In this document: positions 5,814 to 41,298 of the stretch, piece by piece
Layout of the letters: each line of letters starts with the position of its first letter
Position numbering within the stretch: position 1 is the stretch's first letter
NCBI GenBank assembly: GCA_977020255.1
Contig: CDROCS010000253.1
Coordinates: 3,100,001 to 3,164,000, forward strand
From: Obrimoposthia wandeli
Taxonomy: Eukaryota
Length of the DNA stretch: 64,000 nt
Reading direction: 5' to 3'
The notes under the pieces: generated by a model
What the model was told of the DNA's origin: nothing
Databases searched by the model: none
What the model saw: only the letters and a program-made list of their open reading frames with translations
Position numbers and translations under genes: made by a program

Positions 5814-6020
5814 TATACCAATTGGACTCATTTATTGACCACTGGGCGAGAATTAAAAGGCTTAGGGACAAGGCATTGATTGAATAGAATGGTGGTTCAG
5901 GAAAATATGCTCAGGATATTATTCCTGCATTATCTAATAACACCATCGATGTAGTACTCTTACAAATAGTTGCCATTATGTAGTCTTGCTGTTCAAGCGA
6001 TAATTTGATGGGGCCAAGCT
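5814..6020. repeat. Degenerate MITE-like intergenic repeat (TATACCAATT terminus) sharing the AGGCATTGATTGAA-AGAAT core with the ERIC-like copies
   Basis: Core matches the elements at 14652, 19071, 31522 and 40627; right end eroded, so the end coordinate is approximate. Confidence 0.6.
5899..5955 (-). mobile_element. Nested micro-element, longer variant
   Basis: Reverse complement ACTACATCGATGGTG-TTATTAGATAATGCAGG...AGCATATTTTCCT|GAAC aligns with the inserts at 14835 and 31702; same host site as 31702. Confidence 0.65.
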
Positions 6021-14607: not shown

Positions 14608-14653
14608 TATACCCGTTACCAATCAAGATATACTTGGAATGATAACGGGTATA
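14608..14653. repeat. 46-bp collapsed ERIC-like element (terminal repeats only)
   Basis: TATACCCGTTA...TAACGGGTATA; shares its terminal TA with the adjacent full copy. Confidence 0.75.
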
Positions 14654-14965
14654 TACCCGTTCCACTTGAAGATGCATGATTCCGCTGGAATTAGAAACGC
14701 CTTTAGGCAAGGCATTGATTGAAGAGAATAGTTATTCTATTGTCGAAATCAATAACGCAGCATAAAGCGTTTCTAAACCAGCCCCTTGGTGAAGGCTGAG
14801 CAAATCATACTCTGCGTTACCTTTCTTTTTAAGGACGCTACATGGAGGTAGCTTCTTAGAGAATGCAGGAGCACATTCTCCTGAATGACCCTTAATAAAA
14901 AATGCACCTTGATTATGAATCGCTCAGACTTCCTGAAACGAGCATCTTCAAGTGGAGTGGGTATA
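14652..14965 (+). mobile_element. ERIC-like MITE copy A (314 bp)
   Basis: TIRs TATACCCGTTCCACTTGAAGATGC / GCATCTTCAAGTGGAGTGGGTATA, TA ends; near-identical to copies B, C and D. Confidence 0.9.
14835..14882 (+). mobile_element. Nested 48-nt micro-element with two GGA-loop hairpins
   Basis: Absent at this position in copies B and C; followed by GAAT. Confidence 0.8.
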
Positions 14966-15000
14966 ATACTTTTGAACTGAACCTATATAGAGAGATTACT

Positions 15001-19040: not shown

Positions 19041-19070
19041 TTTAATTCTCTTATGTTTTTAATTACGTTA

Positions 19071-19338
19071 TATACCCGTTCCACTTGAATATGCATGATT
19101 CAGCTGGAATTATAAACGCCTTTAGGCAAGGCATTGATTGAAGAGAATGGTTGTTCCCTTCTCAAAATCAATAACGCAGCATAAAGCGTTTCTAAACCAG
19201 CCCCTTGGGGGGAAGGCTGAGCAAATCATACTCTGCGTTACCTTTCTTTTTAAGGGATGACCCTTAATAAAAAAATGCGCCTTGATTATGAATCGCTCAG
19301 ACTTTCTGAAACGAGCATCTTCAAGTGGAGCGGGTATA
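19071..19338 (+). mobile_element. ERIC-like MITE copy B (268 bp, no insert)
   Basis: Same TIRs and body as copy A. Confidence 0.9.
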
Positions 19339-19359
19339 AATAGGTTTAGCGATTAATAA

Positions 19360-31517: not shown

Positions 31518-31521
31518 GATT

Positions 31522-31835
31522 TATACCCGTTCCACTTGAAGATGCTCGTTTCAGGACGTCTGAGCAATTTATATTTAAGGCGCATTTTTTTATTAAGGGT
31601 CATCTCTTAAAAAGAAAGGTAACGCAGAGTATTATTTGCTCAGCCTTCCCCAAGGGGCTGGTTTAGAAACGCTTTATACTGCGTTATTGATTTCGACAAT
31701 AACGCTACATGGATGTAGCTTATTAGAGAATGCAGGAGCATATTCTCCTGAATAACTATTCTCTTCAATCAATGTCTTACCTAAAGGCGTTTCTAATGCC
31801 AGCTGAATCATGTATCTTCAAGTGGAGCGGGTATA
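31522..31835 (-). mobile_element. ERIC-like MITE copy C (314 bp, inverted)
   Basis: Reverse complement of A/B with the same TIRs. Confidence 0.9.
31702..31749 (+). mobile_element. Nested 48-nt micro-element with two GGA-loop hairpins
   Basis: ACGCTACATGGATGTAGCTTATTAGAGAATGCAGGAGCATATTCTCCT|GAAT; removing it restores the copy A host sequence exactly. Confidence 0.85.
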
Positions 31836-31850
31836 TTACGTCGAAATGTA

Positions 31851-40610: not shown

Positions 40611-40626
40611 CAGAAAACATAAGCTA

Positions 40627-40796
40627 TATACCCGCTCCACTTGAAGATGCAGGATTCAGCTGGAATTAGAAACGCCTTTAGGCAAGGCATTGATTGAAGA
40701 GAATAGTTATTCTATGGTCGAAATCAATAACGCAGTATAAAGCGTTTATAAACCAGCCCTTTGGGGAAAAACAGAGCAAAAAATACCCGTCGTTAC
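40627..40796 (+). mobile_element. ERIC-like MITE copy D, truncated (right ~100 bp and right TIR missing)
   Basis: Left TIR and body match A/B to ~40766, diverge to ~40796, then become unrelated. Confidence 0.85.
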
Positions 40797-40917
40797 ATTC
40801 GTTGCTAAGCATTATGTTTGAGACTGGGATCATATTGACGTACCTGATATTCAATCAGCAATCCTAATCTAATGATAATTTTGTGTACTTTTACGAACGG
40901 CAAGATCATTATAAATC

Positions 40918-40947
40918 ATGCCTATGCCTATGCCTATGCCTATGCCT
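40918..40947 (+). repeat. (ATGCCT)x5 expansion inside the IS1595 terminal IR
   Basis: The other three related IRs in the window have a single unit. Confidence 0.9.
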
Positions 40948-41298
40948 ATGCACTTGGCTCAGGACGATTTTACAGGCACATGAATTATTGCTAATTTTAA
41001 CAACCTGTTGGGTATCTGTTTTTCGATAAATCGACGATTGAACCGATAACAGAACTCATCTAAGTATTCTTGTAGGTATTTTCCTGATACGCCATGAAAG
41101 GTAGCCATTCATCAACTAAATAACTCGGTGTTACTCTCGCTTCATAGTTTTGTGTTTGGTCAATTATATTCAATGCGGGTAATGCATCTGAATGAACTTT
41201 TTGACCTCGCTTGCCTTTTTTCTACCGCCAACAAGCGCGTCATCTAGTTCAATTGTGTCACTTAATTGATACAAGCGTAAGCGTATAGCTAACGGCAC

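Follow-up and report, generated by a model that had tools for sequence, protein, structure and literature searches.

Does a sequence of about 48 nucleotides that fills some copies of a bacterial MITE and is missing from others move in its own right, or is it an optional part of the MITE? The question arises from the window analysed here, a stretch of 64,000 nucleotides that corresponds to C253:3100001-3164000 of a 4,677,312-bp bacterial contig in a large mixed assembly and has a G+C content of 38%. An exact search with the second hairpin of the small sequence, hereafter the module, returned more than 120 matching stretches, all from Colwellia species except for one Alteromonadaceae MAG, and the chromosome is therefore attributed to Colwellia. 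The MITE family is about 270 bp long, with inverted ends TATACCC.., and is represented by five copies or fragments within the window and by at least 203 candidate copies in the assembly. It occurs in two length classes: 31 of 40 scored copies have the short form and 9 of 40 are 315-319 nt long. The relevant features of the window are the following.

5856-5898 (-): right arm of the hairpin unit that hosts the 5899-5957 module, gaaccaccattc..caatcaatgccttg.
5899-5957 (-): degenerate relative of the module, a collapsed nested pair.
5899-5912 (-): 14-nt tail GAGCATATTTTCCT of the outer module, with the junction TCCT|GAGCAT.
5913-5957 (-): hairpin 1, linker and variant hairpin 2 (GATAAT..ATATC).
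14650-14966 (+): MITE A, ERIC-like, with TATACCC.. inverted ends; unit 2 filled, apex of unit 1 empty at 14737|14738.
14835-14882 (+): module in MITE A, with hairpin 1 GCTAC..GTAGC, linker CTTCTTAG and hairpin 2 GAGAATG..CATTCTC, placed at the apex of unit 2 as TTTTTAAGG|module|GAATGACCC.
19069-19341 (+): MITE B, both apices empty.
19156|19157: empty apex of MITE B, reading GAGAAGG|GAACAAC on the reverse strand.
19255|19256: empty apex of MITE B, reading TTTAAGG|GATGACC.
31519-31841 (-): MITE C, unit 1 filled.
31604|31605: empty apex of unit 2 of MITE C, reading TTTTTAAGA|GATGACCC on the reverse strand.
31702-31749 (+): module in MITE C, at the apex of unit 1 and on the opposite MITE strand, CGACAATA|module|GAATAAC.
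40625-40809 (+): MITE D, partial; apex of unit 1 empty at 40712|40713, no module.

The copies at 14835-14882 and 31702-31749, both on the plus strand, are identical at 45 of 48 positions and differ at 3, with 0 such matches expected by chance. A 48-mer identical to the 31702-31749 copy is found at seven further loci of the chromosome. The modules are the sole difference between MITEs A and C and otherwise 92-98% identical copies, and MITEs A, B and C, at least 92% alike, display three different fill states. As the earlier note had stated, MITE B is empty at both positions and the sequenced part of MITE D is devoid of a module; its statement that excising the 31702 copy gives exactly the sequence of MITE A, GTTATTC|TATTGTC at 14737|14738, was also confirmed. 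The one-nucleotide ambiguity that it had reported at the 14835 junction proved to be a polymorphism of the host. The filled site of MITE A reads AAGG-module-GAATGACC, its counterpart in MITE B reads AAGG|GATGACC, and in a related species an empty MITE has AAGG|GAATAACCC. Since this empty MITE corresponds exactly to the flanks of the module, the module borders at 14835 are exact. The count of three related copies has to be amended in one respect: the third, on the minus strand, is the collapsed nested pair at 5899-5957 and not a plain copy.

Some observations concern the surroundings of these MITEs. Contigs from two public runs, which consist of short unitigs breaking inside the repeat, join 19069 to 19346 and so indicate a minor co-occurring variant without MITE B, that is, a MITE insertion polymorphism; no insertion or excision of a module was caught in these unitigs. 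The junction between MITE A and its flank gave no match in a metagenome scan. MITE D ends abruptly exactly at the apex of unit 2, after GTTGCTAAG (40809); unrelated DNA lies beyond the break, followed by an ATGCCT microsatellite near 40900-40960. A mini-element of 46 nt at 14608-14653, TATACCCGTTA...TAACGGGTATA, comprises little beyond both MITE inverted ends and directly abuts MITE A. At 883-996 of the window, three tandem 48-nt direct repeats of 60-79% identity occupy apparent coding sequence and are unrelated to the module.

The module is 46-49 nt long and folds into two short hairpins, with a linker of the TTATTAG type between them. The sequence of hairpin 1 is GCTACA-UGGA-UGUAGC and that of hairpin 2 is GAGAAUG-CAGGAGCA-CAUUCUC; the two differ and each folds independently. 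The module ends are ACG.. and ..CCT, without terminal inverted repeats, and hairpin 2 begins 1-2 nt inside the module border. Among 94 distinct copies, 95.4% of the stem cells are paired. Cells in which both partners have changed number 35, compared to 5.6±2.1 in shuffled controls (0 of 500 reach 35) and to at most 13 when the structure is slid by 1-3 columns. Typically, pair 6-15 has gone from A-T to G-C, as in 15 sequences, or pair 27-44 from G-C to C-G. Compensatory changes keep both stems. The loops are near-invariant, with a GGA in each that is at least 90% conserved. At linker position 21, a C is observed only after the left host flank AAGG and an A always after AATA, a comparison uncorrected for relatedness of the copies. 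A hammerhead-like reading of the three-way junction was rejected, the core motifs being absent and Rfam silent.

The two host positions occupied in the window lie at the tips of two hairpin units of one ERIC-like MITE; the units are homologous and inverted relative to each other. Alignment of unit 1 with unit 2 gives z=3.1 in the inverted orientation (11 of 2000 shuffles as good) and z=0.0 in the direct orientation, and in both units the site is preceded by CGTTA at a distance of 15 nt and followed by GCCTTG at 24-25 nt. The position and orientation of the module are therefore constant relative to the unit; judged by flank similarity, this applies to 129 of 150 copies, which belong to one unit family. 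It had been claimed that the copies sit at two host positions in opposite orientations. This is true of the MITEs, since A and C are filled at different positions, but both are the same site of a duplicated and inverted hairpin unit, which weakens the claim of two independent target positions. The distance between CGTTA and CCTTG is bimodal: 38-39 nt in 107 empty units and 86-87 nt in 96 filled units, with almost none between. The filled spacing thus exceeds the empty one by exactly 47-48 nt, so that the target is neither duplicated nor lost. The earlier description of an element without terminal inverted repeats and without a consistent target duplication is thus confirmed; direct repeats are likewise absent at the module borders.

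The left flanks differ between module copies. On the 3′ side, GA follows the module in 139 of 147 copies, 55/62 in this assembly and 84/85 in other Colwellia, the latter set consisting of the 85 copies with usable flanks (score ≥30) from 80 fetched loci. The module had been said to insert always 5′ of GAA. GAA is indeed the majority flank (50/62 in this assembly and 71/85 in other Colwellia), but the near-invariant flank is GA. The extended flank is GAAT in 42/62 and 56/85 copies and GAAC in 7/62 and 14/85, and the junction reads G|GA in 40/62 and 78/85. As empty sites retain one GA, the dinucleotide belongs to the target. Its assignment to the element itself, or to a 2-nt duplication, was rejected, as only one GA is present at empty sites and the left flank has no terminal GA. 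Integron attC sites (core GTTRRRY) and dif-like sites were also rejected as models, because the flank GAAYAAC does not fit them. Most insertions split a GGA at the 5′ edge of an apical loop. The known targets are the apical loop of the Colwellia MITE hairpin unit (AAGG|GAAYAAC), the loop of the module's own hairpin 2 (GCAG|GAGCA), a hairpin-1-like loop (CATG|GATG) and a few unrelated hairpins.

Can the distribution of filled sites be explained by the amplification of filled MITEs? Pairwise identity reaches 90% between modules and 57-59% between their 24+24-nt flanks, and one exact 48/48 module sequence is present in three host classes. MITE amplification alone would have made the flanks uniform as well. 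Moreover, a diverged subfamily of 46 nt, ACGGTACAGGAAGTACC..GATAAT..ATTATCCT, in which both hairpins are kept via compensatory changes, is nested in the hairpin-2 loop of resident modules at 9 loci, always between ..CAG and GAGCA. Two of these loci are on this chromosome (L079 and L087), one is in another species (L135), and the junction pattern retrieved the other six from metagenome contigs. Each outer module has the variant typical of its host class; the classes represented are alpha2, delta, beta, leader-type and ttatgttac-type. Because five host classes are involved, the nestings represent separate events and not a single composite that was copied. On this chromosome the nested-junction pattern occurs at five sites, one of them the 5899 copy. 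The description of the nested subfamily is based on loci other than junction site C253:4390013 and seven variant-subfamily (X') hairpin-2 matches with no detectable outer tail (C253: 1581263, 1766895, 3881771, 4093143, 1665124 and 2746395; C1117: 54922).

Further copies lie outside the MITE unit. Orphan modules are found in unrelated hairpins at L070, L086, L090 and L080; at L070 the module interrupts, at G|GA, a hairpin-1-like GGA loop made by the flanks CACAAGCATG|..|GATGCTTGTG. In a leader set (L136 5270-7080, L114, L168, L185 and L270), a 26-nt sequence, GTCATTCCCGAGGTGTTTTAATCGG, replaces the MITE arm and is followed by the module and then by GAATCTC. The stem of hairpin 1 is altered in this set, to GTGGCAT..ATGCTAC or GTCACAT..ATGTGAC, and three copies of the leader-set repeat are located inside 2 kb of one MAG.

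Recombination has also acted around the modules. Like 5899-5957, the loci L083 and L089 contain hairpin 1, the linker, the subfamily hairpin 2 and the outer tail. Such a collapsed form is the expected result of a deletion between the two CTTATTAGA linkers of a nested pair. The arms around 5899-5957 differ in unit type, the left one resembling 'tttgtaagg' units and the right one being of the 'caatcaatgccttg' type. These unlike arms at 5856-6000 suggest recombination between modules residing in different MITEs. At L002 (C253:1578661 region), the module is directly followed by GAAACGAACATCTTC of the MITE right end, the intervening sequence having been deleted between two TCCTGAA repeats, of which one arose at the 3′ junction of the module.

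Taken together, these observations make it likely that the module, which has no gene, is an independent insertion element. Independent, site-specific and duplication-free insertion is well supported, and we consider it quite probable. The earlier proposal of a tiny non-autonomous mobile element is thus retained in the sense of a separate unit that inserts at a fixed 3′ target and duplicates nothing, but finds no support as regards an HUH transposase as its mover. The number of independent target contexts is only about ten, since about 86% of the copies lie in one homologous hairpin-unit family. Purifying selection on the module, for instance for CsrA binding, could partly mimic recent spread.

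The census, based on searches with the full 48-mer at up to 3 mismatches (21 matches), with two half-patterns (49 and 52 matches) and with a profile over fetched loci, gave about 60 module copies on the chromosome and a few more on small contigs of the same assembly. Among 401 sampled genomes of the family, 30 carry the second hairpin. The module occurs across Colwellia and in some related genomes, with a patchy copy number of 0 to 49 within Colwellia. Whole genomes have their own compensatory variant: GACAATG..CATTGTC characterises some, and every listed copy of another genome reads GAGAACG..CGTTCTC. The MITE or its hairpin unit was also found in two Colwellia genomes that have no module. In the plasmid collection no module was detected; the only matches (H1-H4) were in Pseudoalteromonas chromids, which carry the left half of the MITE (inverted end and first unit) at 76-83% identity and no module. 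The empty unit, present in both settings, therefore exists independently of the module. Viral contigs yielded no copy of the module, and a literature search returned no published description of Colwellia MITEs or of CsrA-type repeats in mobile elements.

The comparison of filled and empty orthologous sites that had been proposed earlier did not yield a strictly orthologous pair, either for MITE C in the five closest genomes or for the MITE upstream of hinT. MITE C is absent from all five of these genomes. The hinT-upstream MITE is empty in the related species mentioned above (G003, AAGG|GAATAACCC), the only close relative with a MITE at this place. Its ends differ, which makes its orthology doubtful and leaves room for an independent insertion.

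Which enzyme could move such an element? The earlier note had proposed an HUH-type transposase; for IS91, IS200/IS605 and RAYT enzymes, the matching of ends and the co-occurrence across Colwellia both fail to sustain this suggestion. The only Y1 gene of the chromosome encodes a RAYT of 154 aa (L108 2974-3438, C253:2376573-2377037). It sits between two near-identical flagellin genes, and its flanking REPs, GTAGGGGCGACTTTAGTCGCC, are unrelated to the module. The chromosome also contains two intact IS91-like Y2 genes and some fragments. A search for transposases flanked by the ends of the module, as had been recommended, was negative: the module profile detected nothing near 16 fetched Y1 or Y2 loci, among them six Y2 loci examined to a distance of 1.5 kb (E>1), and in none of the half-pattern matches is a gene enclosed by two half-modules. 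No autonomous relative sharing the ends of the module and no intermediate came to light. In a comparison of 55 Colwellia genomes, Y2 was missing from those carrying 40, 27, 17 and 15 modules, and four Y2 hits came from a genome that has no module at all. Genomes carrying 26 and 14 modules lack Y1, which does occur in four genomes devoid of the module. The orientation of the modules showed no replication-arm bias (145 of 300 permutations as extreme), a test blurred by the fact that most copies ride in MITEs; a mechanism using single-stranded DNA of the lagging strand might be expected to produce one. The module resembles PATEs in having hairpins near both ends, no inverted ends, no duplication and a one-sided fixed flank; the hallmarks of classical DDE MITEs, terminal inverted repeats and target-site duplication, are both missing from it. 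HUH-type nicking and joining of single-stranded hairpins would be the best analogy, with no known family implicated.

We propose that the module is mobilised, by copying or by movement, in single-stranded form, and that the enzyme responsible is structure-specific and supplied in trans. This enzyme would read the two conserved hairpins as the ends of the element and a GA-bearing hairpin loop as its target, as HUH enzymes do. Entry itself has been repeated, in one orientation and with no duplication or loss at the target, between N and GA (mostly G|GA), at or beside the tip of a pre-existing hairpin. Once in a MITE, the module would also spread passively with MITE transposition. A bolder form of this proposal is that the element of roughly 48 nt is the smallest self-targeting mobile DNA known so far, that the enzyme takes GGA-loop hairpins both as ends and as target, and that nested CsrA-type arrays in MITEs could seed sponge RNAs; we regard it as speculative and unlikely. 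If it were true, each insertion would split one GGA loop and add two.

Several other explanations were weighed against independent insertion. The module might be an optional part of the MITE hairpin unit, with a single origin, kept for a structural or RNA function and without mobility of its own, a view to which we give a low probability. It would have spread by MITE transposition and gene conversion between homologous units and been lost by precise deletion at the hairpin tip, a route that seems equally doubtful. The 129 of 150 copies at one position and orientation of a single homologous unit family are what this view predicts, as are the homology of the two MITE positions and the constraint on stems and GGA loops; the chimeric hosts and microhomology deletions at 5899-5957 and L002 show that recombination does act. 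However, identical modules are present in host classes whose flanks are about 57% alike, too little for homologous exchange, and the borders have no direct repeats that would favour repeated exact deletion. Nested and orphan copies are without flanking homology to the MITE unit, and the unit persists in module-free genomes, which also speaks against it. A polymerase could alternatively switch template at stalled hairpin tips, in a quasipalindrome-like manner, and copy a tip into another hairpin with no enzyme dedicated to the process. That hairpin tips are the targets, that MITE D is broken exactly at an apex and that microhomology deletions occur around the module (L002) would all fit, but nucleotide-exact borders in contexts sharing only G|GA, a constant orientation and a nested subfamily specific to one loop make this highly improbable.

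The remaining alternative is that the module is a non-autonomous derivative of the IS91, IS200/IS605 or RAYT/REP type, moved by a transposase encoded elsewhere. Duplication-free insertion without inverted ends is typical of what it would require, and so are hairpins at both ends and a one-sided fixed flank, which on the reverse strand amounts to insertion 3′ of (T)TC. Y1 and Y2 genes are both present on the chromosome, and nested REPIN clusters are known (PMC3116915). Against it, the sole chromosomal Y1 is a RAYT with different REPs, no module-like sequence was found near any fetched Y1 or Y2 gene, no split half-sites bracket a gene, and neither Y1 nor Y2 is common to all module-rich genomes, both being found in module-free ones. 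Only a minority of copies (7/62 and 14/85) are flanked by GAAC, at which IS91 inserts; hairpin 2 lies 1-2 nt from the border and leaves no space for an IS608-type guide; and a replication-arm bias is lacking, most copies riding in MITEs. We consider this derivation unlikely. Independent insertion of the module into hairpin loops is thus the reading that we prefer.

The hairpins also resemble binding sites for CsrA, whose SELEX consensus is RUACARGGAUGU with fully conserved ACA, GGA and GU (PMC7652899). Hairpin 1, CUACAUGGAUGU, matches this consensus in the invariant ACA, GGA and GU, and the loop of hairpin 2 displays CAGGAGC. About 24 nt separate the two GGA sites, and the chromosome has a csrA gene. 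In an Rfam scan of the MITE A region nothing rose above noise, and neither hammerhead nor CsrB/Rsm models matched. Between tandem genes, the modules are co-oriented with their neighbours in 37 cases and anti-oriented in 35, as expected at random. This absence of a bias fits a constraint at the DNA level rather than at the RNA level, and we therefore read the conservation of the hairpins mainly as a requirement of the mobilising machinery. CsrA binding by the module is a resemblance in sequence only. Should the module be mobile, regulatory RNA motifs would be multiplied and scattered through the genome, because each module carries two near-consensus CsrA sites. As in sponge RNA hairpins of the CsrB/RsmZ type, a GGA is exposed in the loop of both hairpins and the CsrA consensus is matched; unlike these, the modules are dispersed DNA inserts and not an sRNA gene, with no Rfam match and a random orientation relative to neighbouring genes.

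Among known systems, REP/REPIN-RAYT elements share with the module a tiny, gene-less, hairpin-forming and extragenic nature, compensatory stem changes, lineage-specific variants and self-nesting; REPINs can lie inside REPINs (PMC3116915). A REPIN, in contrast, is an inverted doublet of one REP beside its RAYT gene, whereas the module is made of two mutually unrelated hairpins. In addition, the REPs beside the RAYT of this chromosome are different ones, Y1 can be missing where modules are abundant, and the module targets a hairpin loop. IS200/IS605 elements and PATEs also have no inverted ends, cause no duplication and possess hairpins near both ends and a short one-sided fixed flank. They have an autonomous partner with the same ends, for which the Y1/Y2 loci fetched here offered no equivalent, and guide tetranucleotides 5′ of each hairpin, whereas the 48-nt module has its hairpin 1-2 nt from the border and shows no replication-strand bias in the test mentioned above, which the copies riding in MITEs blur. 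IS91 inserts without duplication beside a fixed GAAC/CAAG, similar to the GAAY flank of the module. The main flank of the module is GAAT, however, with only GA near-invariant; no similarity of the ends was found, and Y2 is missing in several module-rich genomes.

The host of the module is an ERIC-like MITE. ERIC repeats have internal insertions of about 70 bp at fixed sites, and BOX-type repeats are modular. In these repeats, as here, a palindromic, MITE-like sequence comes in two lengths, the longer one containing a small additional palindrome at a fixed internal position. The module differs in that it also occurs in unrelated hosts and nested in itself, and has a defined G|GA loop target; to our knowledge, none of these three properties has been described for ERIC. 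If the module is truly mobile, it would offer a way to explain why ERIC-like repeats exist in a short and a long form, for which an explanation has been wanting. It would also push down the lower size limit of bacterial mobile DNA and establish as target rule the hairpin loop, its own included. As no described transposase family explains such a rule, it would point to a new enzyme, or to a known enzyme with an activity not yet described. The module is best filed with the miniature gene-less hairpin elements, such as REPINs and PATEs, from which its size, its loop target and its self-nesting set it apart.
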